Shown: positions 2,228 to 51,639, counted from the first letter of the stretch. The stretch: 64,000 nucleotides of DNA from Paraphysomonas bandaiensis (GCA_965644295.1 CBFFRP010000455.1:1-64000), one strand, 5' to 3'. Numbers and translations are program-made. Notes: generated by a model from the sequence alone, not told the origin.

Positions 2228-2671
2228 AGTGATTTGTGAAGATGATATTAGCTGTAATGTCGTCAACGGTTCCGTGTTGCATTGGGATATTGTAGTCGGA
2301 GTTGTATTCAATTTTGGTATTGTAGAACAAGGAATGTTGTAGTTATAACTTATATAGCTCAAGTTTCTTACTAATTTCTACCTTTCTTCTATTCTTCGAG
2401 ACTCTACGGGGAGTGCCTGAGCTTCACCGTGTACTGGAAATATTGGGTGAAGGAGTTGCACAAAGCCTCATTGCAGAAGTTTAGAATTTGTAACTTTTAC
2501 CCTTGAATTAATAAGTATATAGATATATAATATATAGAAATTCAATGAGACATACACTTTGTATTTGGTATAACCTTTCAACCACACTCAAAAACCAAAG
2601 ACCTTATCTATCAACATTTGACATTTAGGATGGATACTCTTAAACAACTGAACATTGATATTACATGGTGA

Positions 2672-2758
2672 CCCTCAACAAAGTCGGACTCGCACCTTTT
2701 CGAGGTGTTCTGGGGGATAAGTGCCGGAGAGATTCTCTCTGGGAAACTAACGTGAGCC
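2672..2758 (+). ncRNA. Putative HDV-like self-cleaving ribozyme (L1Tc/ingi Pr77-type), copy 1
   Basis: Manual fold: P1 CCCUCAAC/GUUCUGGG(GG) (imperfect), P2 GG(A)CUCGC/GUGAGCC, P3 ACC/GGU, L3 UUUUCGA, P4 2724-2742, J4/2 GAAACUAAC with candidate catalytic C at 2747. Confidence 0.65.
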
Positions 2759-3878
2759 GCAAACATAGTCAGCAGATATTGTTCTGCCCACTCATAGCCA
2801 AATGCTTGTGTGGTACAAGGGACACTAATAAGTGTCACTTGTGTAGACGTCTTTGGGCCCTGACAAATAAACAGGCATCCGGGAATGGGCCCACCTCAAG
2901 GGCATCCGGGACAGGGCCCACCAGAAGGGTAACCGGGGTATTGGGCTGCCTGCTGAAGTTAAGCATCCGGGATGTTCACCTTAAGAACTCAAAACACCTG
3001 AAGTCAGCAGGTGTCAGGTATATCAACATTCTGCTTGCTCCCTGCGTTTGCTTTGAGTGATTGATGCTGAGTATGAGCTCACATTATTCGGTATCTGTGT
3101 GGCCAATGACCGAGGTAATGCGTCAAACTTTCCTCATGGATGCATGGCAATGGCAATGATGTGCTTAGACCTGTCATGTCTTCTCACACGTCTACTGCCT
3201 AGTCTTGGTTTCTCCTGACCCAGGTCATTGAGATTATATCAAGGCTCTGGCACTGTTCTCCAAGCAGTGTCAGGTACATTTGTGGTGCTTTTATGTTATT
3301 CTTGCTTAGTAGGTTTTCATCCGAGCGGGGAAGGTGCACGGTTTCCTACTAGTGTAAGTCACTCGGGAGAAGAGTGCAAGGTGGATGCATGTGCTGGACG
3401 AGTGCACACAATGGAGGGAAGACATTGGAGTCAGCTTGAATTTGTAACAGATTTTGGTAGATGTCTGTTTCATGCGTCAGTGTGCAAAATTGCACCTGTG
3501 AGACAGCTTCGTGACCGTGGGAGGACCCGGCGCTATAGAGCTACTTTATTCTCCCTTCCAGACTACCTGCTGCTGTGAACACCACATTGAAGAGGGCCCT
3601 AAAGATCTGCCGCATATACAGGAGACATATGCCGAAGACACCGACCGCAAGTTGTTTGTGTTAGGACAAGTAGATTGGGCAGGAGCGTATGATCCGGCTT
3701 AAACACGCAACTCGTCGTATGCCCATGTAGCTAACTAAATCGTGTTGTATAGTTGAGCACTTGTCGGTGCATGCAATAGTAACTAGATGAGAGTCATGTT
3801 ATGCATAGTGTCGCGCGAGTTGTTAGGTTGGTCGCGGCAACGCACAAGCTTGCGCTTCTTAATAATCAGATTTTCAAC
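2672..3878 (+). mobile_element. Non-autonomous non-LTR-type retroposon, copy 1 (ribozyme-headed family)
   Basis: Perfect 14-bp TSD ATATTACATGGTGA at 2658-2671 and 3879-3892; first ~320 bp shared with 50575-50893; 3' end TAATAATCAGATTTTCAAC resembles the end of copy 2. Confidence 0.85.
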
Positions 3879-4350
3879 ATATTACATGGTGATTAATTAG
3901 TAAAATTATAACCAAGCACTCTCATCATTCATTGATATTCACTGTTAGAGCTGGACATTACACTGAAGTTAACTTAGCCATGCTTTGTTGTTTGTTGCAC
4001 ACAATGTCCTTTCAAGAATCAATCTTTCAAGAAACTACTGTACATGGCGAAAGTATTTTCTCTATTCTTGCATGGATTCCAGTCAACATCAGATACACTG
4101 CACAAAAACCTCATGTCTAGCCTGATGTCGCCTATGATACGTCGATACCGTACGTACTACAGTACTACATATATATTGTAATTATATGAGGACACATAAG
4201 CCCGCCATGTGAATCAAACTATTAATATTCATTACTACTGGTGTTAGTATATCACGGTACTTCAGCAAAGCCACAAAAACAACAAGTCCATGTACGAAAC
4301 AACAGTAGAAATTGTTTCGATACAGACTACAGGAGCCACTGCACTATCTA

Positions 4351-5499: not shown

Positions 5500-5750
5500 T
5501 GTTGTGTGGGTGTATGTATATATATATGAGGGGGGATATATATATATATGTGTGTATATGTGTGTGTAGTAGTACAGTGTATATGAATCCTACACTAATA
5601 GATACTCAATGAGAGAGTGAAGAGATGAGGATGAAGAGATGGGATGGGAATGTAGATTTGTTTGTCTCGAGTAAAAGGAGCTCGAGTGACGTGGTAGAGA
5701 TAGAGCACAATTGTGCAACTTACTCATCAACTCCGTATCCATAATACCAC

Positions 5751-6181
5751 ACATACATACATACATACATACATACATACATACATACATACATACATAC
5801 ATACATACATACATACATACATACATACATACATACATACATACATACATACATACATACATACATACATACATACATACATACATACATACATACATAC
5901 ATACATACATACATACATACATACATACATACATACATACATACATACATACATACATACATACATACATACATACATACATACATACATACATACATAC
6001 ATACATACATACATACATACATACATACATACATACATACATACATACATACATACATACATACATACATACATACATACATACATACATACATACATAC
6101 ATACATACATACATACATACATACATACATACATACATACATACATACATACATACATACATACATACATACATACATACA

Positions 6182-6211
<30 letters not shown>
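5751..6211 (-). repeat. (TATG)n microsatellite between divergent G-beta and GH79 genes
   Basis: ~460-bp perfect (CATA)n on the + strand. Confidence 0.98.
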
Positions 6212-12825: not shown

Positions 12826-13149
12826 AATATTATTCTTAAGTATGTGAAGTATCCTTCTAAGTAGTATTTAGGTAAACATGAGTTCCCTCTGTCACAAATA
12901 CTTTTATATTATTTGTAGTCCCTATTCAGAATTATTCTTCATATAATCAGAGCTGCGGTGTCATAGAGCGGAAATTACACTTCATTGTAACCACGTAACC
13001 ACTATGATTTATTTACTATTTAAATTGGGACTCTCGTGTAAGTATCAGAGGTACATATATTGTAGTGGGCTTGCTATGTACTACTAAACTGGGCTTGCTA
13101 TACTAGTGGCGGGCAACCGTCTCGGGACTGCTTGTGCATCGCTGCGAGC

Positions 13150-13310
13150 ACCATGGTAATTATAATGGCATTTATGAAAAATGTTCCGGCGATTGTAATG
13201 TTCATTAATGCCTACTAAGTAAATAGTACAGCTAGTGTGGTGCTCCCTCGTAACTATTAATTGCGTCAAATAACAATCTACGAATCGTATCTACTTTTCG
13301 CTTTCCACGC
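13150..13310 (+). mobile_element. Relic of the subterminal region of the 8269 hAT family
   Basis: Similar to 8310-8460 (CCGGC.ATT.TAATG, CATTAAT.CCTACTAA, GTGGTGCTC). Confidence 0.45.
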
Positions 13311-21764: not shown

Positions 21765-23193
21765 GTTTGTCACCTTCTGTGCATATGTGAACTTATCTTA
21801 AGATATTAAATATGAGTTATATGGGCTTCGAATTCTTGAGTCTAACGATGTATGTATCCCATTTGTATGTCCCTCTATAGAGAAAATGCATGGACAACTA
21901 CCCTGCGACTTAAGTCGTGGTAGATTGGCCATTATACATATTTTCCAATTCTTGTCCCAAATAGGAGTAATATAGATGTAGCAACACGTGCGCGAAAAAA
22001 TATCATCTAGTAGTGATGTGCGCTACACACAATCGAATAGTCGTGTGTGAATTCAATGTCGATAGTGTAGATCCCAATATGCTAGCTCAGTATTCTTGCT
22101 TGAATCCACCTATACCGCTACAATTTTCCTTTAGTCGTGTTTGTTGAAGTGGTATTCATGAGACGGCACCTTGAAGGCGCGCACAGAGGATAATAGCTTA
22201 ACATTTTTACTATTTTTCTTTTCTGAGTAAATGTACATAATTGGAGAGAGTAAATAGCTATTCTTATCTAATAGCGCAACAACCCCAAGTATTATCCAGT
22301 TATTTAAAATTTTAGCTGTATGACAATCAGGAAGATTACTCTCTAAATAGTAGTTTGCATAGATTTATTCATCCATGTCCATGTTTTAAATCTTCTCCCG
22401 TTCCCATAATAGTTATTAGATTTGACATTTATGGTGCTTTTTATTAAATAGGTGGGTTGAATGCCACATACATGTTGACTAAGATAGGTGGGGTTTACTT
22501 ATTCTATACTCCTATTATAAAGCGTATTAGATTTCAAAATACAAGAATTTAACAGATCAGGAACAAATATCAGTTTAACTTCTTCCTCATTCGACTTGAT
22601 TTGGTGTGAAAACTTCGCTGTATGAAAGCTACGACAATTTACGTCCATATTTTTGAAATAAGCCAGTCTGATAAGCCAACACCAGTCCTATTAAAGTACG
22701 ATATCAATCTGTTAAATTGAACACCTGGTAGGTAATCTGAAATTACAACTTAGATTGAATAATGCTTCTAAGAAATATCTGATCCTTCTATAGATCAAAA
22801 CGACAATTTCGCACGCTTTAAAATAATAACTTTGGTGTTCCAAGCTTACATCAATGTGCTATTAATTGGCAACTTAAACATTAATTTCACAAATCCCAGC
22901 ACACCAAACTGGAGAAATATAGCGGCTCATACAATCAAAATATGGTTATAATATATTGCAGTTGACAACATATTATATGTACACTCCAATCACCACTATG
23001 AAATGTGATATCAAGCAATCAAACTACAGACGCATGTCGCATATATATACATACAACCATAGATAGCCTATGCATTATTGTAGAGTTAGATAAGCATTCC
23101 TATATGGGTACAAGATACAGAGTTTGACAACTCATTGATATGGATAAGTGATTGTGTTAACTCCAAGCATTATATGTCCCAGTCGACACTGAT

Positions 23194-23411
23194 TATGTAC
23201 GTATGTATGTATGTATGTATGTATGTATGTATGTATGTATGTATGTATGTATGTATGTATGTATGTATGTATGTATGTATGTATGTATGTATGTATGTAT
23301 GTATGTACTGTATGTAGTAATGTATGTATGTATGTATGTATGTATGTATGTATGTATGTATGTATGTATGTATGTATGTATGTATGTATGTACTGTATGT
23401 AGTAATGTATG
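23194..23411 (+). repeat. (TATG)n microsatellite, interrupted
   Basis: Two blocks each ending TACTGTATGTAGTAA; ~290 bp upstream of ATG 23700. Confidence 0.95.
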
Positions 23412-24921: not shown

Positions 24922-25918
24922 CATGTTATTAGGTCGCAACAATTACACTTTCTGTGAAGTTGATGTTACCAGAGTCATGGAGCGTATCCTCACGTCTGGA
25001 ATATGGCATTGGCGACTCTTACCGACCCCATGATCACTGATTTCTAATCATTTTGCCATCAATGGACGCTAGAGAATTATACTGCGCTCCGTGACCGACT
25101 CTATGGTAATAATCTGGATCGTGCACCTGGATACTGGAAGGTTAATGGTGCCTTACTTCCGCACAAACTGGCTCATCCAAGGTCAAGGCACAAGGAATGC
25201 CTGCGGAAACTCCTAACTGATCCAACTCTCCCGATTTGGAGCTCCGCCACTCCAAAGAAACTCTCTCGCAGAGCCTGGAATACCTCCCTTCCGCAGGTTG
25301 AACGATTCTGGTCAGGAGCAATTACCGAAGCTCAAATGGAAAGCGTTTTCGGAACACACTACCATTGCTCCCTCAATACGCGTGGATAACGTACCATTGA
25401 AACAGCAATTGTTACCCTCCTTCAACCGCTTTATACGGCAGCCAATCAAATGCACCAAGATCGCAGTGGGAGTTATGCTGCTGCCACCAAGAAGGGGCAA
25501 CAAAGACTCCTCCCTAGACTGAGGCAGCGACGTGGACACACACGAAGGCCCCCCAGCTCGCGCTCAAAATGCAGTAATATGCGATTTAAATTGAGCAACT
25601 CCCAGCGAAAGCCACGGGTTCTCCGCTTACTGCGCGTACAGCGGAGACCTAATGCGGTCCCGCCATCCCCGCCCCAGCAGAGACGCCACAACGCCAACTC
25701 CTTCAACTGACGTCCGCAGAGAGCCTCTCCCCCTCACACAAGAACGGAAGTGGTTGTACCTTGATGCTTGCGGCGACGCACAAGGAGCTTATGTAGCGTT
25801 AAATAGTAGGATATGAGAATTTACAGTTACTGGTAGAGGTCGATCTAGCTTGACTAGTCTTCATCTAACTGCTTATCTAGTTTCGATTCTTGACGCCTAC
25901 TACAAATAATAAGACTTC
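24922..25918 (+). mobile_element. 5'-truncated non-LTR retroelement remnant (decayed ORF end plus structured 3' tail)
   Basis: Long frame with a stop and a frameshift ending at 25710; 25741-25917 aligns with the 3' module 50893-51080 of the TSD-bounded retroposon; ends AATAATAAGACTT; no RT motif visible. Confidence 0.55.
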
Positions 25919-26928
25919 CGCACTGCATACGTGCTAGGTATCTAGCTATAGGTATTCCTAGCGACCCTACCAACAGGTAAGTGCCTATTTCTTATTTCTC
26001 ACCACCTGTAGGTACCATAAAATCATACCTAGTATAGGTGCCTCGTATTACCAATAGGTGACTCAGCCCTCAGCCCACATTACCTATAAGGACCATCACA
26101 TTTATAGGGGTCTTGGTCATAGGTATTACCTATAGGTGAGTTGTCATATACCTATAGGTGCTAGCGCATATTGCCTATAAGTATCGGACAGATAGCCTAT
26201 CTACTATCTACCTAGTACCACACAGATAAAGTACTGTGCCTGTCTGGCAAGCAATAAATTCCATAGTAAGTCGTATTTTTGTTGTGAAGAATAACTATTC
26301 ACGTCACTTATATATACCAGGGGAATATATTATAGAATTACATGCCGTCATCATCATTATTAGAGCCACTGGCACTAGATATACTAGTACTTTTGTCTTC
26401 TGAAAGTAAGAAGCCATCAGTGTCAGAGTTGATAGTGTTCTTTGTAGAATGGTTATTTTCTTGCATAGTATTGTGCTGCATTTCTATTGCACCAGAGTCA
26501 TTCCTGTTCATAGATACCTCGCTATCGTCGGCCTTATTATAGTCAGCATTTACCGAATCATTCTACTCGCAACAATCGAAGCTTTTCTTGGAATATACCA
26601 AAATTCGGCCCTCTCGCTATAAAATCATGAGTACAATCTGGAATAACTCGCACCATCTCAATCAATTATATGTAGCATAATATCTGCTGCCATCAGCGAT
26701 TGTAAAGTACCTCTACATTGTATTTGCAAAAGAACAAAACTACTCACTCATCACAATGAATCCATACACTCAGCAATAGAGATGCTTGCAGTCGTCATAT
26801 GATGATAGTTGTGACACTGATATTACTAGTAATTGAACTGGTTGATTATCTCTACTATCATCTCTGTTATGATCTGTTGGTGTTCATTATTATGCAAGGG
26901 GTTCATATATAGCACCACACACATACAG

Positions 26929-26959
<31 letters not shown>

Positions 26960-27051
26960 TGTATGTATGTATGTATGTATGTATGTATGTATATGTATGT
27001 AGGTATGTATGTATGTATGTATGTATGTATGTATGTATGTATGTATGTATG

Positions 27052-27082
<31 letters not shown>

Positions 27083-27490
27083 GTATGTATGTATGTATGT
27101 ATGTATGTATGTATGTATGTATGTATGTATGTATGTATGTATGTATGCATGTATGTATGTATGTATGTATGTATGTATGTATGTATGTGTATGTAGGTAT
27201 GTATGTATGTATGTATGTATGTATGTATGTATGTATGTATGTATGTATGTATGTATGTATGTATGTATGTATGTATGTATGTATGTATGTATGTATGTAT
27301 GCATGTATGTATGTATGTATGTATGTATGTATGTATGTATGTATGTATGTATGTATGTATGTATGTATGTATGTATGTATGTATGTATGTATGTATGTAT
27401 GTATGTATGTATGTATGTATGTATGTATGTATGTATGTATGTATGTATGTATGTATGTATGTATGTATGTATGTATGTATGTATGTATGT
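26929..27490 (+). repeat. (TATG)n microsatellite upstream of the C2 gene
   Basis: ~560-bp array ending 140 bp before ATG 27630. Confidence 0.98.
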
Positions 27491-27629
27491 AGTATGTGTA
27501 TTATTGGACTGTTACTCTGTCTATTCCATCTCGCAACTTGCTGCTTAGTAGAATTCATAATCTAATTCCTCCTTATTACTGTCTTTATGATCTCTGAGAG
27601 TCTATTGCATTCCACACTCAAGTCCTGAT

Positions 27630-30600: not shown

Positions 30601-33600
30601 GCTGTGGAGGAACCGCATGTAGACGAAGTGGATATGTACGATCCCAATGCCGGATATTTAGATGTTTTCAAGTTAGACCTGACGAATTTGAAGAATAAAG
30701 GTGGTCACATGCTGTATTTCTACTCTGATTTTTACGTGCATTGCAGTTGGTATATTTGGAAAACAGTTTCCATATGCTGTTCTACGCGTTGGGTTTGGTG
30801 ACTCTTGGATGCATATACTTGAGCCTGTGACCAATGCTGGTCGTAAGGCATCATGGCGAAAGAATATAACGGGTTCAGTGAAACGAAGTGAAATTATTGA
30901 CGGAGAAGTTTACATCGATGTGAAATCTAAGAACTCGGCGTCTGACGATAAATTCATTGGTAGCGCTTTAATCAGTGATGGAGAGAAACTCTTTGAACAT
31001 GAGAATGAATGGGTTCAGCTCTTCGGCGACTTGGCTGACGAGAAAGGAAGGCCAGCGGGGAAATATTCCGTTAACATAAAGTTTCGTGGGGACCAAACGG
31101 AAGCGGAATTCCCGGAAAATCCTTTGGAGGAGTCAGTGGAGGAAGATAAACAACGGCGGAATTTCGTTTCGTCACATTCAACGAAAGCAGATATCCAGGA
31201 AATCGGGAAAGGTGATGACGAGGCACTGATTCCAGTAATTGACCCCACAAGTATTACTCCACGACACGGAGTGTTAGACGTTGCACTCATAAAATTAACG
31301 GACCTTAAAAACACCAGTATGTGGGCAGTATGGTTTTCTCAGTCAACTGATTGTATTGTTTAGGTGGAATTTTTGGTATCCGACAGAGCCCCTATGCAGA
31401 GCTGTCCGTTGGTAATAATTTAAAGTTTAAAACCGACCCCATTTTGCATGGCGGAAGTGAAGCTTCATGGCAGACTTGTGGTTCTTATCCCGTCATGAAC
31501 AGCAATATTGTAACACAGGGGCTGATTCTATATGTGCGGTCGAAGAATTCTTCTTCTGGCGATATAGAGATTGGTCATGCACTATTGAGTCACGGAGCTG
31601 AATTATTTGACAAAATAGATGAGTGGGTTGATATTCAAGGAGAAATAGAGGATGGTGATGGTAACTTTGCTGGTAAGTTTTCGGCCAGTTTACGGTACAG
31701 CAATGTGGGCAGTGAAGTTAGTGCGGCTGAGGTTGACCCATCTATATTGTCACCTGAGGAGCAGTGCGTGAGTGATAATCCAAACGTGGGGACATCAACC
31801 GCTTTATCGTCAGGTGGGTGTGAAGAGCCCGAATCAGTTGTTGACTCTACTGCGCCTGGATGCCTAGAGGTGCAACATGTGTCACTATGGCGTTTGAAAA
31901 ATACAGGTATAGTAGGATGTGGTGTGCGTTATATATGAAATTGTGAGGGTAACACTATTCTACCATGTAGAGGGTCTCCTTAGTGGCAAACAGGACCCAT
32001 TCGTGGAGCTGATTGTAGGAGACGGCACAGTGTGGAAGTACGTAAGTGATGTTAAGGAAAATTCTGGGGTCAGAGCTTCTTGGAATCTGAATATATCTGA
32101 GAGAATGGAGTTGTCAGCTTTGAAAGAGGGAATGTTAACGCTTCGTGTGATGGATCGGGACCCGAATAAAGATAAGCTCATTGGAAGATCTGCTGTTGAC
32201 TTACAAGCACTTTTCACTGGGTTAGATGAGTGGGTGGAAATTGAAGGCATACTGGTTGATGTCAATCAGCAGATGGCAGGGGAGTATATTCTTCGGATGC
32301 GTTACAGAACTAAGGAGGAGGATAGGGGGAAACTTCAAGTTCGAAAATTAGCAATGACTAGCTTAAAGAACACAGGTAGTACTGTGTGTATATAAGTTTT
32401 TAATTTGTTGTCTTAATTATACTTCTGTGAGACAGAGGGACTGTTTGAGGGGAAACAAGACCCTTACGCTGTCATGACACTCGGCAGCGGGTCGAAATGG
32501 AAGTTTCGAACCGATGTTTTGGAAGATGCTGGTGTCGAAGCCTCCTGGGACTTAAATATATCTGGCAGAGTAGGAGAAGACGACATAACCCAGGAATTAA
32601 TAATATGTGCGAAAGATAGCGACAGCAAGGGTGACAAAGTAATTGGACTTTCCCATGTTGATTTAGAACCTGTGCGATCTGGAGCTTCGCAATGGGTTGA
32701 TATTCAAGGAGAAATAGAGGATGGTGATGGTAACTTTGCTGGTAAGTTTTCGGCCAGTTTACGGTACAGCAATGTGGGCAGTGAAGTTAGTGCGGCTGAG
32801 GTTGACCCATCTATATTGTCACCTGAGGAGCAGTGCGTGAGTGATAATCCAAACGTGGGGACATCAACCGCTTTATCGTCAGGTGGGTGTGAAGAGCCCG
32901 AATCAGTTGTTGACTCTACTGCGCCTGGATGCCTAGAGGTGCAACATGTGTCACTATGGCGTTTGAAAAATACAGGTATAGTAGGATGTGGTGTGCGTTA
33001 TATATGAAATTGTGAGGGTAACACTATTCTACCATGTAGAGGGTCTCCTTAGTGGCAAACAGGACCCATTCGTGGAGCTGATTGTAGGAGACGGCACAGT
33101 GTGGAAGTACGTAAGTGATGTTAAGGAAAATTCTGGGGTCAGAGCTTCTTGGAATCTGAATATATCTGAGAGAATGGAGTTGTCAGCTTTGAAAGAGGGA
33201 ATGTTAACGCTTCGTGTGATGGATCGGGACCCGAATAAAGATAAGCTCATTGGAAGATCTGCTGTTGACTTACAAGCACTTTTCACTGGGTTAGATGAGT
33301 GGGTGGAAATTGAAGGCATACTGGTTGATGTCAATCAGCAGATGGCAGGGGAGTATATTCTTCGGATGCGTTACAGAACTAAGGAGGAGGATAGGGGGAA
33401 ACTTCAAGTTCGAAAATTAGCGATGACTAGCTTAAAGAACACAGGTAGTACTGTGTGTATATAAGTTTTTAATTTGTTGTCTTAATTATACTTCTGTGAG
33501 ACAGAGGGACTGTTTGAGGGGAAACAAGACCCTTACGCTGTCATGACACTCGGCAGCGGGTCGAAATGGAAGTTTCGAACCGATGTTTTGGAAGATGCTG

Positions 33601-36600
33601 GTGTCGAAGCCTCCTGGGACTTAAATATATCTGGCAGAGTAGGAGAAGACGACATAACCCAGGAATTAATAATATGTGCGAAAGATAGCGACAGCAAGGG
33701 TGATAAAGTAATTGGACTTTCCCATGTTGATTTAGAACCTGTGCGATCTGGAGCTTCGCAATGGGTTGATATTCAAGGAGAAATAGAGGATGGTGATGGT
33801 AACTTTGCTGGTAAGTTTTCGGCCAGTTTACGGTACAGCAATGTGGGCAGTGAAGTTAGTGCGGCTGAGGTTGACCCATCTATATTGTCACCTGAGGAGC
33901 AGTGCGTGAGTGATAATCCAAACGTGGGGACATCAACCGCTTTATCGTCAGGTGGGTGTGAAGAGCCCGAATCAGTTGTTGACTCTACTGCGCCTGGATG
34001 CCTAGAGGTGCAACATGTGTCACTATGGCGTTTGAAAAATACAGGTATAGTAGGATGTGGTGTGCGTTATATATGAAATTGTGAGGGTAACACTATTCTA
34101 CCATGTAGAGGGTCTCCTTAGTGGCAAACAGGACCCATTCGTGGAGCTGATTGTAGGAGACGGCACAGTGTGGAAGTACGTAAGTGATGTTAAGGAAAAT
34201 TCTGGGGTCAGAGCTTCTTGGAATCTGAATATATCTGAGAGAATGGAGTTGTCAGCTTTGAAAGAGGGAATGTTAACGCTTCGTGTGATGGATCGGGACC
34301 CGAATAAAGATAAGCTCATTGGAAGATCTGCTGTTGACTTACAAGCACTTTTCACTGGGTTAGATGAGTGGGTGGAAATTGAAGGCATACTGGTTGATGT
34401 CAATCAGCAGATGGCAGGGGAGTATATTCTTCGGATGCGTTACAGAACTAAGGAGGAGGATAGGGGGAAACTTCAAGTTCGAAAATTAGCGATGACTAGC
34501 TTAAAGAACACAGGTAGTACTGTGTGTATATAAGTTTTTAATTTGTTGTCTTAATTATACTTCTGTGAGACAGAGGGACTGTTTGAGGGGAAACAAGACC
34601 CTTACGCTGTCATGACACTCGGCAGCGGGTCGAAATGGAAGTTTCGAACCGATGTTTTGGAAGATGCTGGTGTCGAAGCCTCCTGGGACTTAAATATATC
34701 TGGCAGAGTAGGAGAAGACGACATAACCCAGGAATTAATAATATGTGCGAAAGATAGCGACAGCAAGGGTGATAAAGTAATTGGACTTTCCCATGTTGAT
34801 TTAGAACCTGTGCGATCTGGAGCTTCGCAATGGGTTGATATTCAAGGAGAAATAGAGGATGGTGATGGTAACTTTGCTGGTAAGTTTTCGGCCAGTTTAC
34901 GGTACAGCAATGTGGGCAGTGAAGTTAGTGCGGCTGAGGTTGACCCATCTATATTGTCACCTGAGGAGCAGTGCGTGAGTGATAATCCAAACGTGGGGAC
35001 ATCAACCGCTTTATCGTCAGGTGGGTGTGAAGAGCCCGAATCAGTTGTTGACTCTACTGCGCCTGGATGCCTAGAGGTGCAACATGTGTCACTATGGCGC
35101 TTGAAAAATACAGGTATAGTAGGATGTGGTGTGCGTTATATATGAAATTGTGAGGGTAACACTATTCTACCATGTAGGGGGTCTCCTTAGTGGCAAACAG
35201 AACCCATTCGTGGAGCTGATTGTAGGAGACGGCACAGTGTGGAAGTACGTAAGTGATGTTAAGGAAAATTCTGGGGTCAGAGCTTCTTGGAATCTGAATA
35301 TATCTGAGAGAATGGAGTTGTCAGCTTTGAAAGAGGGAATGTTAACGCTTCGTGTGATGGATCGGGACCCGAATAAAGATAAGCTCATTGGAAGATCTGC
35401 TGTTGACTTACAAGCACTTTTCACTGGGTTAGATGAGTGGGTGGAAATTGAAGGCATACTGGTTGATGTCAATCAGCAGATGGCAGGGGAGTATATTCTT
35501 CGGATGCGTTACAGAACTAAGGAGGAGGATAGGGGGAAACTTCAAGTTCGAAAATTAGCGATGACTAGCTTAAAGAACACAGGTAGTACTGTGTGTATAT
35601 AAGTTTTTAATTTGTTGTCTTAATTATACTTCTGTGAGACAGAGGGACTGTTTGAGGGGAAACAAGACCCTTACGCTGTCATGACACTCGGCAGCGGGTC
35701 GAAATGGAAGTTTCGAACCGATGTTTTGGAAGATGCTGGTGTCGAAGCCTCCTGGGACTTAAATATATCTGGCAGAGTAGGAGAAGACGACATAACCCAG
35801 GAATTAATAATATGTGCGAAAGATAGCGACAGCAAGGGTGACAAAGTAATTGGACTTTCCCATGTTGATTTAGAACCTGTGCGATCTGGAGCTTCGCAAT
35901 GGGTTGATATTCAAGGAGAAATAGAGGATGGTGATGGTAACTTTGCTGGTAAGTTTTCGGCCAGTTTACGGTACAGCAATGTGGGCAGTGAAGTTAGTGC
36001 GGCTGAGGTTGACCCATCTATATTGTCACCTGAGGAGCAGTGCGTGAGTGATAATCCAAACGTGGGGACATCAACCGCTTTATCGTCAGGTGGGTGTGAA
36101 GAGCCCGAATCAGTTGTTGACTCTACTGCGCCTGGATGCCTAGAGGTGCAACATGTGTCACTATGGCGTTTGAAAAATACAGGTATAGTAGGATGTGGTG
36201 TGCGTTATATATGAAATTGTGAGGGTAACACTATTCTACCATGTAGGGGGTCTCCTTAGTGGCAAACAGAACCCATTCGTGGAGCTGATTGTAGGAGACG
36301 GCACAGTGTGGAAGTACGTAAGTGATGTTAAGGAAAATTCTGGGGTCAGAGCTTCTTGGAATCTGAATATATCTGAGAGAATGGAGTTGTCAGCTTTGAA
36401 AGAGGGAATGTTAACGCTTCGTGTGAGGAGCAGGAATTCGAATAAAGATAAGCTCATTGGAAGATCTGCTGTTGACTTACAAGCACTTTTCACTGGGTTA
36501 GATGAGTGGGTGGAAATTGAAGGCATACTGGTTGATGCCAATCAGCAGATGGCAGGGGAGTATATTCTTCGGATGCGTTACAGAACTAAGGAGGAGGATA

Positions 36601-37106
36601 GGGGGAAACTTCAAGTTCGAAAATTAGCCATGACAAGCTTAAAGAACACAGGTAGTACTGTGTGTATATAAGTTTTTAATTTGTTGTCTTAATTATACTT
36701 CTGTGAGACAGAGGGACTGTTTGCGTGGAAAAAGAACCCTTACGCTGTCATGACACTCGGCAGCGGGTCGAAATGGAAGTTTCGAACCGATGTTTTGGAA
36801 GATGCTGGTGTCGAAGCCTCCTGGGACTTAAATATATCTGGCAGAGTAGGAGAAGACGACATAACCCAGGAATTAATAATATGTGCGAAAGATAGCGACA
36901 GCAAGGGTGATAAAGTAATTGGACTTTCCCATGTTGATTTAGAACCTGTGCGATCTGGAGCTTCGCAATGGGTTGATATTCAAGGAGAAATAGAGGATGG
37001 TGATGGTAACTTTGCTGGTAAGTTTTCGGCCAGTTTACGGTACAGCAATGTGGGCAGTGAAGTTAGTACGGTTGAGATTGTTACGGTTGGGAAATCAGTT
37101 AATTAG
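27630..37106 (+). CDS. N-myristoylated EF-hand (calcineurin-B/NCS-like) protein with ~16 tandem C2 domains; about 20 short introns
   Basis: MGAIISS (MGxxxS); EF-like DFAGTGDMNRDEL and VSREEFVEWA; repeated GxLxV...LKNT|G..KQDPxV...ASW...V.D.D...D..IG...W..I.G; the ORF fragments are joined by GT-AG introns. Confidence 0.8.
31624..37067 (+). repeat. 1069-bp intragenic tandem repeat, ~5.1 near-identical copies (two C2 domains and two introns per unit)
   Basis: ORF starts recur every 1069 bp (31919, 32988, 34057, 35126, 36195; 32474...36750). Confidence 0.98.
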
Positions 37107-49776: not shown

Positions 49777-50574
49777 AAACTCAACCGCAAGTTATTTATG
49801 TGCACTGAAGGATATATAAGAATAGCCACGTTTGACAGTTTGTGATTAGCTAGTTATGACTATCATCTGTGACGATTCTAATATGCGTCATTTTACTGGA
49901 AATGTGAGTTGTAGGTAGAATATATGAAAGATATAATGTTATAAAATTTAGACCCCATATATGGTGCAGGAGAAGGTTAGATTGAGAAATATATATTATG
50001 TAGTGGTGTACCTGTGTATACGAGATTCATTCATGCAAGATTATACACTTCTATCGATGAAACATGACTCTTACCAGAAGCTATTGCAGTAGATATCGAA
50101 AATTGAAGCAGTGTAACTGATTCCTATACAGATACACTTTACTTTCATAGCCTATATGCCTATATGAGATTACGAGAGCCCCACGCATTCCAGGGGAGGA
50201 GAGGGCTCGGCCAATGCCACGCTAGGCCTATACTGAGGAGTCACGCATGGTCACGAGAAACTCCACATAATCTTTGTTTGGAAAAATAAAAACGGTTCTA
50301 CTAGAAATTGCGCGAATTACATATTATTAGGATCCTTCTTACTATAAAATGTGTCAGTTATGATGTTCAATGAACTATATCATGAACTGAATTAGAGAGA
50401 GCATCTGTTGAAGGTACGTGATCATCATCACGATCGTCATTATTTGTCAGTTATACTTGTAACTATTCCGTTGTGTGTGATGGTTACGTTCTGCATTATT
50501 ATTCACTTTTTCTATATTGCTGTGTTCATCACTACTTCACACTCTAATAAAACCACAACTTTCTTCTTATACTA

Positions 50575-50660
50575 CCCTCAACAAAGTCGGACTCGCACCT
50601 TTTCGTGGTGTTCTGGGGGATAAGTACCGAGAAATTATCTCTGGGAAACTAACGTGAGCC
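50575..50660 (+). ncRNA. Putative HDV-like ribozyme, copy 2
   Basis: Same fold as 2672-2758; L3 UUUUCGU; AGUA/GAA flanking P4; candidate catalytic C at 50649; differences from copy 1 are concentrated in P4. Confidence 0.67.
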
Positions 50661-51084
50661 ACAAACATAGTCAGCAGATATTGTTCTGCCCACTCATAGC
50701 CGAATTCTTGTGTGGAACAAGGAACACCAATAAGTGTCACTTGTGTAGACGTCTTTGGGCCTTGACGAATAAAATGGCACCCGGGAATGGGTCCACCTCA
50801 AGGGCATCCGGGACAGGGCCCACCTGAAGGGTAACCGGGGTATTGGACTGCCTGCTGAATTCAAGCATCCGAGATGTTCACCTTAAGAACTCAGAGCGGA
50901 AGTGGTCGCACCTTGGTGCTTGCGGCGACGCACAAGCAGCTTCCGTAGCGTTAAATAGTAGGATAAAAAAAGTGTGTACTGATTAGTTGCAGGTAGAAGT
51001 CTAACTAGTTTGTCTAGCATTCATCTAGCTACTAAGTTGGTGCAGGTTTTTAACGCCTATTGCTAATAATAATAAGACTTTCAA
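50575..51084 (+). mobile_element. Non-autonomous retroposon, copy 2 (510 bp; 5' module 50575-50893 + 3' module 50893-51084)
   Basis: 7-bp TSD TATACTA at 50568-50574 and 51085-51091; the empty site is visible in family B at ~55158; same 5' start as 2672. Confidence 0.87.
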
Positions 51085-51639
51085 TATACTATTACTAACC
51101 TTAAATCTGCATTCATATATAGGTCATGCATAGCTTTGAGAAATCCCGCGTAACCTTAGCGAAGGTGAACACGGGGATGCGGCAACAGAATCTGCGCAAT
51201 ATATGCGGTCAGCTACTTTGGTGCACGGGTAGGCGGGCGGTAGAATCAGTGCTATATCTCGGAGTTATATGTGGTATATACCAGCCAGCCTACTACCTAC
51301 ACTATGGCCACGCCCTCGGAATGGGGCACCCCTCACCCCCTGTCCAAATCTATACCATTCAGCCTGTACGCGCAACCGTATTCTGGATTACAGCCAGGAT
51401 TACAACTTTTTAATTCCGGATGCCAAGCTACAATCTTCGGAAAAGCGGATTACCTCGACCATATATTTATGATATCTGTATAGAATACTACGATTTTACG
51501 AATACACTATTTTTCGGCATTGTTTTACCGTTTGGCCGCTATGGCCATTCAAACATATTGACATATAACACCAATGTCCATAAACTACAAGAACAAAGAA
51601 CTTAGAACAAACAAAGAACAATGGATATTATTTGAGAAC

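Follow-up and report, generated by a model that had tools for sequence, protein, structure and literature searches.

A candidate HDV-like ribozyme fold at the fixed 5′ end of two SINE-like retroposon families in a marine eukaryote

HDV-like self-cleaving ribozymes are defined by a nested order of their paired strands (PMC4908430), and ribozyme-defined 5′ ends are already known from retrotransposons of insects and trypanosomes. In these ribozymes P1 is usually 6-7 bp long (PMC4908430) and P1′ normally lies immediately downstream of L3/P3 (PMC3774820). U-U or C-C mismatches in P1 are linked to loss of in vitro activity (PMC3774820), Agam-2-1 variants with a 12-nt linker and a short P2 cleave very slowly (PMC4908430), and the TbSIDER1 and TcoSIDER1 heads, which have adequate folds, are inactive in vitro (PMC4035085). 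It is also documented, for R2, that HDV-like active-site sequences can converge (PMC3774820). Here we describe, in a window of 64,000 nucleotides (the whole stretch of DNA analysed), two retroposon copies whose first 85 nucleotides can be drawn in this nested order, in an atypical form of the fold.

The original prediction was that two non-coding retroposons in the window begin at the same base, immediately after their target-site duplications (TSDs), and our analysis confirms this: the insertions at 2672 and 50575 both start with CCCTCAAC, and each directly follows its upstream TSD (Table 1). The two copies (copy A and copy B) are 93% identical over positions 1-320, the stretch that we call the head, and diverge beyond it; copy B, whose length had been put at about 400, measures 510 bp. 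Neither copy A ORF of at least 80 aa has a Pfam match, and TSD lengths across the elements, copy B included, run from 7 to 15 bp. With TSDs that vary in length, ends that are fixed (5′) and defined (3′), and a lack of coding capacity, A and B are non-autonomous, SINE-like, non-LTR retroposons, and the prediction of a non-coding retroposon family with TSDs and a fixed 5′ base is upheld. Rfam and ARAGORN searches found no similarity of the head to tRNA, 7SL or 5S, ARAGORN detecting no tRNA in the head of copy A, and head positions 26-29 are a TTTT run. Such a run would tend to terminate polymerase III.

Downstream of the candidate ribozyme (2757-2995), a CATCCGGGA...GGGCCCACC motif is repeated three to four times in the head, and several copies have one or two deletion variants of this block in common. 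Some 180 bp separate copy A from the stop codon of a + strand ORF that precedes it in the same orientation (window 2400-2671), which makes read-through from this ORF into copy A conceivable; RNA-library depth is present over the ORF at 2300-2366. Elsewhere in the window there are long (TGTA)n-type microsatellites (1-320, 5600-6200, 23150-23320 and 26800-27560), which create spurious long ORFs in several frames, and an array at 31624-37080 of five identical 1,069-bp tandem units with a sixth, partial unit at 97%.

Table 1. Window coordinates of the two retroposon copies and of the strands of the proposed fold (positions within the element are counted from C1)
Feature	Window position	Strand	Remarks
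Copy A upstream TSD, 14 bp, ATATTACATGGTGA	2658-2671	+	identical 14-mer at 3879-3892
Copy A, full-length A-type non-coding non-autonomous retroposon, 1,207 bp	2672-3878	+	ends ...TAATAATCAGATTTTCAAC
Copy A downstream TSD, 14 bp, ATATTACATGGTGA	3879-3892	+	
P1 5′ strand, C1-A6, CCCUCA; predicted cleavage 5′ of C2672	2672-2677	+	pairs with 2711-2716
J1/2, positions 7-17, 11 nt, unpaired in the model	2678-2688	+	
P2 5′ strand, positions 18-22, CUCGC	2689-2693	+	pairs with 2752-2756; in copy B MFE
P3 ACC/GGU, positions 23-25/33-35, around 7-nt L3, positions 26-32	2694-2706	+	consensus L3 UUUUCGU
Spacer GUUC, positions 36-39, between P3′ and P1′	2707-2710	+	atypical
P1 3′ strand, positions 40-45, UGGGGG	2711-2716	+	from descriptor; in RNAfold MFE of copy A
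P4 hairpin, positions 53-71, 8 bp, 3-nt loop in main subfamily	2724-2742	+	
J4/2 GAAACUAAC, positions 72-80, candidate catalytic C76 at 2747	2743-2751	+	in copy B: 50649
P2 3′ strand, positions 81-85, GUGAG	2752-2756	+	
Remainder of the ~320-nt head module, common to A- and B-type	2757-2995	+	
Copy B upstream TSD, TATACTA	50568-50574	+	
Copy B, B-type retroposon, 510 bp, head + LINE-derived tail	50575-51084	+	
Candidate ribozyme of copy B, P4 one base shorter	50575-50659	+	descriptor match at 50575
Copy B tail, homologous to LINE F2 3′ UTR	50893-51083	+	87% identity, 191 nt
Copy B downstream TSD, TATACTA	51085-51091	+	

The window's own 62.5-Mb assembly, searched with head positions 1-324, gave 2,490 first-look candidates, of which 40 were scored and found to be 96-100% identical; we put the family at roughly a thousand or more copies, many of them near genes. 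The 5′ starts of the 30 genomic copies that were fetched are uniform: all 30, which are the best full-length matches and therefore say nothing on how often 5′ truncation occurs, begin at C1, with unrelated sequence upstream up to the preceding base. Wherever the whole element lay within the fetched stretch, a TSD of 11-15 bp abuts C1 with no extra bases. Of the other fetched copies, 23 are 98-100% identical to a reference copy over 1,204-1,215 bp, and the 3′ end of these A-type copies reads ...TAATAATCAGA(T/C)(T/A)TTCAAT, with a few A/T bases before the repeat of the TSD. With identities of 96-100% and first-look candidates in the thousands, the family is young and has been very successful, and its master copies were thus fully functional with exactly this head.

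With few exceptions the ~320-nt head leads into an A or a B body: a pattern search found another continuation at 4 sites genome-wide after position 85, and at 9 after position 320. The head is therefore confined to the non-autonomous elements. Patterns designed to leave out the consensus and so pick up other head families in the genome matched nothing but point mutants and chance sequences (41 matches, against 21 for a control pattern). In metagenomes, from which records of this genome may be missing, 43 loci matched one degenerate pattern for diverged relatives; all were GC-rich chance matches, and head-like flanks were absent at every one of the 43. Two of the 30 fetched elements (L017, G000:C485, and L030, G000:C404) sit within older copies of this head, their TSDs spanning head positions 29-42 and 30-40, and in an RNA-library contig of run X1 a reversed element tail is joined at head position 34 (window 2705). 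There may be a preferred insertion target inside the head, or these cases may be due to chance.

In several LINE families of this genome an AP-endonuclease domain precedes the reverse transcriptase by about 2 kb, and three of these families (F1, F2 and F3) were sampled. The 3′ UTR of F2 (G000:C433) is 87% identical to the final 191 nt of copy B, in a match that runs to the very 3′ end of the LINE, and the B-type element is therefore the head joined to an F2 3′ UTR. The terminal AATAATCAGA motif of the A tail is common to F1, F2 and F3, and the 3′ ends of F1 and F3 read ...TAATAATCAGA(T/C), as in the A-type element. At their 5′ ends, none of the three families carries the head in the stretches read. 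Matching among the 12 copies of F2 begins at one base, 16 nt before the ATG, and among the 5 copies of F3 four further copies begin to match at the reference copy's first base, where there are tandem monomers of roughly 330-400 bp; the head is absent from both of these defined 5′ ends. It is also absent from the 8.2 kb upstream of the endonuclease domain of F1, whose 5′ end is not defined. Judged by F2 and F3, and by F1 over the 8.2 kb read, the system is thus not of the L1Tc/NARTc type.

The F3 monomers are spaced roughly 330-490 bp apart, with each match about 400 bp long (L044 4353-5000; G000:C44, C207 and C32), and recall the promoter monomers of mouse L1. The window contains LINE pieces of its own: a 5′-truncated F2-like fragment (25200-25813, + strand), which is 68% similar to the last part of the F2 ORF and 90% similar to the first part of the F2 3′ UTR, the latter being the sequence that forms the copy B tail; and a piece of an F3-type LINE 3′ UTR (~12990-13200, - strand), which includes the hairpin GGTGCTCGCAGCGATGCACAAGCAG and is nearly identical to the 3′ UTR in L043.

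In the proposed fold, numbered and paired on the family consensus (U32, A52; T32A, in L3, and A52G are changes private to copy A), the strand order P1-P2-P3-L3-P3′-P1′-P4-J4/2-P2′ can be drawn from element base 1 in both window copies. P1 has six contiguous pairs and P2 has 5 bp, each with one G-U, and P3 is paired in 41 of 42 copies. J4/2 has C76-U-A-A and then one extra C before P2′; CUGAC is found instead in one old copy, in L103, which has a B tail, and in a contig from a different organism. The pairings listed originally (ACC/GGU, a 7-nt L3, CUCGC/GUGAG with its one G-U, and CUAA) are all present. The L3 given as UUUUCG(A/U) is indeed a 7-nt U-rich loop, but its final A (2703) is private to copy A, the consensus having U32.

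P1 had been expected to be atypical, and it is so in either of two registers: six pairs that follow a 4-nt spacer; or, with P1′ adjoining P3, the pairs C1-G43, C2-G42, C3-G41, A6-U38, A7-U37 and C8-G36, a register that leaves U4-U40 and C5-C39 mismatched in 40 and 39 of the 42 copies. We know of no precedent for a 4-nt spacer between P3 and P1′. The options for P1.1, as read from the sequence, are U28-A46 alone or two G-U pairs in the other register. RNAfold, which gives nested structures only, returns P1+P3+P4 for copy A and P2+P3, with a different hairpin in the P4 region, for copy B; the MFE folds of the two copies together recover all four helices. Folding-energy z-scores (-0.2 to -1.0) are not unusual, and are uninformative for a pseudoknot.

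How often such an arrangement arises by chance was gauged with a relaxed descriptor anchored on the first base (6-8 pairs in P1 and 5-8 in P2, with 0-15 nt for J1/2; three Watson-Crick pairs in P3; an L3 of 6-8 nt that begins with U and has G as its penultimate base; 0-4 nt of spacer; and C-N-R-A, 0-1 nt, P2′). Over both strands of the window (127,780 positions) there are 2 matches, at 2672 and 50575 only. Other loci of the genome (146,622 positions) gave 4 matching positions from 2 independent sequences, and dinucleotide shuffles (189,360 positions) gave 4 from 2 independent places. The background thus stands near 1e-5 per position, and so does the chance of coincidence with the first base set by the TSDs, leaving aside that the ranges were chosen after seeing the candidate, by which significance is possibly inflated one or two orders of magnitude. 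The match in the head falls on the very base that the TSDs define independently. In L032, L034 and L035 a relaxed match at position 1024 (counted on the + strand in L032 and L034, and on the reverse complement in L035) precedes by some 0.5 kb the reverse transcriptase domain match of another retroelement family; it has GUAUUC as P1, an AU-only P3 and CCAA in J4/2, and is probably a chance match.

A strict descriptor (7-bp P1, P1′ directly after P3, P2′ directly after CNRA) does not accept the head, because of the 4-nt P3-P1 spacer or, in the other register, the U-U and C-C mismatches. Both the strict and the relaxed descriptor also miss L1Tco, which is an active ribozyme, so descriptors of this kind are imperfect in both directions. 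In Rfam, whose HDV-type models leave out one of the two pseudoknots, no HDV-type family matches anywhere in the window at gathering scores, and at E ≤ 10 no ribozyme family matches copy A, copy B or a consensus copy; the matches that do appear are noise (lncRNA fragments, a CRISPR repeat, FsrA). The predicted HDV-like head is thus borne out in its nested order from base 1 and in the relaxed descriptor, but not by the strict descriptor or by the covariance models of Rfam.

We propose that head positions 1-85 may be an HDV-like self-cleaving ribozyme at the front of two non-coding, LINE-dependent retroposon families. The elements would be transcribed by read-through from neighbouring promoters, and the nested double pseudoknot (P1-P4, and J4/2 with C76) would cut the transcript 5′ of C1. 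The cut RNA would then have a defined 5′ end and a LINE-derived 3′ tail, and the reverse transcriptase and endonuclease of a resident LINE could copy it into new sites; here we infer the cleavage, the read-through transcription and which LINE would mobilise which element. Of the single explanations considered, an HDV-like ribozyme best accounts for a fixed 5′ base together with a rare pseudoknot arrangement at that base. Our confidence in it is nevertheless evenly balanced, because the P1/P3 junction departs from that of known ribozymes and no independent model matches; and the precedents of the P1 mismatches, the Agam-2-1 linker and TbSIDER1 place the candidate at the edge of what is known to work. 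The more specific proposal, that in a protist remote from insects and kinetoplastids a stand-alone HDV-like ribozyme with a non-canonical P3-P1 junction heads SINE-like elements whose tails come from at least two ribozyme-less LINE lineages, is made more tentatively, and we would not lean towards it.

Variation among the copies bears on this proposal, and on its principal alternative. Our alignment comprises 42 non-redundant heads, of which 27 lead into A-type bodies and 15 into B tails. In the core (1-49 and 73-85; 62 positions) there are single-copy changes at 27 positions and variants found in three or more copies at none; in P4 (23 positions) the figures are 5 and 5; and in the body (86-300; 215 positions) there are single-copy changes at 82, and substitutions in three or more copies at 11, plus indel blocks. 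The single-copy changes, which reflect decay after insertion, are evenly spread (27/62 in the core vs 82/215 in the body, p = 0.46), whereas variants in three or more copies, which were inherited from active source copies, are concentrated in P4 (5/23 vs 0/62 at the other ribozyme positions; Fisher p = 0.001). For these latter variants the difference between core and body is weak (Fisher p = 0.13, Poisson 0.02-0.04).

P4 is the sole part of the head that differs between subfamilies, and the differences that had been noticed there between the two window copies prove to be a property of the family. The hairpin is retained in each of its three main forms (22, 7 and 6 of the 42 copies) as well as in the form found in copy B only, and G55-U69 has become G-C in 7 copies; in P2, G21-U82 has become A21-U82 in 2 of 42. 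P1, P2 and P3 show no variation beyond single-copy changes in the 42 heads and hence no covariation signal, so that covariation neither supports nor refutes the fold. The propagating lineages thus conserved the core and let P4 drift with its hairpin kept, as is expected of an HDV-like ribozyme; the same conservation of the core is expected of any functional 5′ module.

The head might instead be an internal polymerase II promoter or initiator that starts at C1, as Pr77 is in L1Tc, with pairings that are non-catalytic and a fixed 5′ base that results from a precise start site and full-length reverse transcription. Core conservation fits this equally well, the module common to both families is the whole ~320-nt head and not its first 85 nt, the head has another continuation at only the 4 and 9 sites given above, and the canonical features of HDV-like ribozymes are not fully present. 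A promoter of this kind, however, leaves unexplained why a descriptor match with a background of ~1e-5 should lie exactly at base 1, and no untemplated 5′ bases are seen among the fetched copies with readable TSDs. Untemplated 5′ bases are often seen with capped LINE-1 transcripts. We regard a promoter as rather unlikely.

The occurrence of the family in poly(A) RNA libraries is a point in favour of a promoter and of the ribozyme alike, whereas contigs that cross the 5′ junction count against the ribozyme. The RNA data comprise 24 runs, as assembled contigs only, from which RNA ends are not readable, and no pile-up of ends is reported. Coverage of the element comes from two marine metatranscriptomes, made from poly(A) RNA or cDNA, and from runs of three coded organisms, so that the host is a eukaryote that occurs in such marine samples. 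Depth is high on the element and near zero on its unique flanks, and at the 5′ junction (2672) several contigs run on into other flanks. Contig coverage of a repeat present in thousands of copies shows neither transcription nor cleavage, and DNA carry-over is possible.

Alternatively, the head may be a look-alike that has decayed or was never active, its resemblance to HDV being due either to descent from a ribozyme or to chance, and its 5′ structure serving RNA stability or recognition by LINE proteins without any cleavage. The atypical P1/P3 junction, weak P1.1, short P2 and long J1/2 would all be at home in such a structure, as would the consensus nested MFE of -25.1 kcal/mol, which is reached via a competing hairpin that sequesters the 5′ strand of P2 and lies below the energies of both nested halves of the pseudoknot (P1+P3+P4, -19.3 kcal/mol; P2+P3+P4, -18.3 kcal/mol); and the TbSIDER1/TcoSIDER1 heads are a precedent for an adequate fold that is inactive. 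Set against this is the youth and success of the family, whose master copies were functional with this head, and a non-catalytic role does not predict a C-N-R-A junction adjoining P2′. We consider an inactive look-alike unlikely, slightly more so than a promoter, and retain the HDV-like ribozyme as our working explanation.

The original prediction also pointed to landmarks of trypanosomatid Pr77, and we compared the head with the L1Tco and TbSIDER1 sequences in the supplement of PMC4035085. In global alignment z ranges from -0.4 to 2.95 and is not significant: the best pair, copy B with TbSIDER1 (z = 2.95), is reached by 36 of 2000 shuffles and by 21 of 2000 random genomic 90-mers, while z is at most 1.3 for each of the three remaining pairs. 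Checked against the published sequences, the landmarks stand as short motifs that the head has in common with TbSIDER1 and L1Tco in the same order (a CCCU start, ACC-N7-GGUG, GUACCGAG, and CUAAC before P2′, the CUAAC being found in TbSIDER1 too), but the overall similarity is insignificant; ACC-N7-GGUG, GUACCGAG and CUAAC are too short to show homology, and the label 'Pr77-type' finds no support. That the head is a true homologue of Pr77, through ancient descent or horizontal transfer of an element of the ingi/L1Tc clade, is most improbable: the motif order is in its favour, but alignment scores lie within or near the shuffle distribution, HDV-like active sites are known to converge, as in R2 (PMC3774820), and the head is absent from the 5′ ends of F2 and F3 and from the 8.2 kb read for F1.

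If the head does cleave, ribozyme-defined retroposon 5′ ends would extend to a marine microbial eukaryote, and a ribozyme could be used as a free-standing module by parasites of ribozyme-less LINEs, which bears on how non-autonomous elements without polymerase III promoters obtain a defined RNA. The structural rules by which genomes are searched for HDV-like ribozymes would relax, and copies near genes could cut host transcripts that read into them; on the more specific proposal above, the fold would also tolerate a 4-nt insertion between P3 and P1. If it does not cleave, the family is an ordinary SINE-like one, young and with a conserved head.

Considering the systems already described, the candidate resembles the L1Tc/NARTc, ingi/RIME and SIDER elements in having an HDV-like fold, of 77-96 nt in those elements, at the exact 5′ end (PMC3185411, PMC4035085), and the trypanosomatid set likewise includes short non-coding retroposons with variable TSDs. 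Trypanosomatid Pr77 also has ACC/GGU as P3, an L3 of 7 nt and CUAA(C/G) before P2′. L3 of L1Tco (UCAACGU) resembles that of the head in length and in its U...CG. pattern, L1TcRz has a single P1.1 pair, like the U28-A46 option here, and the 3-bp P3, the 7-nt L3 with U first and CG at 5-6, and the C-U-A-A in J4/2 are all features of active relatives. In contrast, the trypanosomatid P1 is 7 contiguous pairs directly after P3, and here it is 6 after a 4-nt spacer; a trypanosomatid LINE and its non-autonomous partner have one head, and here the 5′ ends of F2 and F3 differ from it; and the 3′ end here is ...AGAYNTTC with a short AT run, not poly(A) as in the trypanosomatid elements.

In R2 and the insect SIDEs the ribozyme releases the element RNA from a co-transcript and has been kept by non-autonomous derivatives (PMC3774820), a role which the predicted cleavage would share. 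R2, however, inserts at a specific site in 28S rDNA and its cleavage often lies upstream, within 28S, whereas this family is dispersed with variable TSDs; and SIDEs derived from R2 took their head from R2, whereas the head here is not derived from the partner LINE. With CPEB3, drz-Agam and other HDV-like ribozymes known from structure-based searches the candidate shares the double pseudoknot, cleavage (here predicted) at the first base of P1, the C of J4/2, a variable P4 and a P1 within the range of 6-7 bp (PMC4908430); it differs from them in its P3-P1′ spacer, the extra base between CNRA and P2′, and a U-rich L3 that restricts P1.1 to U-A or G-U pairs. Like classical SINEs, these elements are very abundant, combine one head with 3′ tails from resident LINEs and would be mobilised in trans; unlike them, their head has no tRNA, 7SL or 5S similarity and contains TTTT at 26-29. 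Self-cleavage in place of a polymerase III promoter would, if the more specific proposal is true, be a third way to build the head of a SINE.
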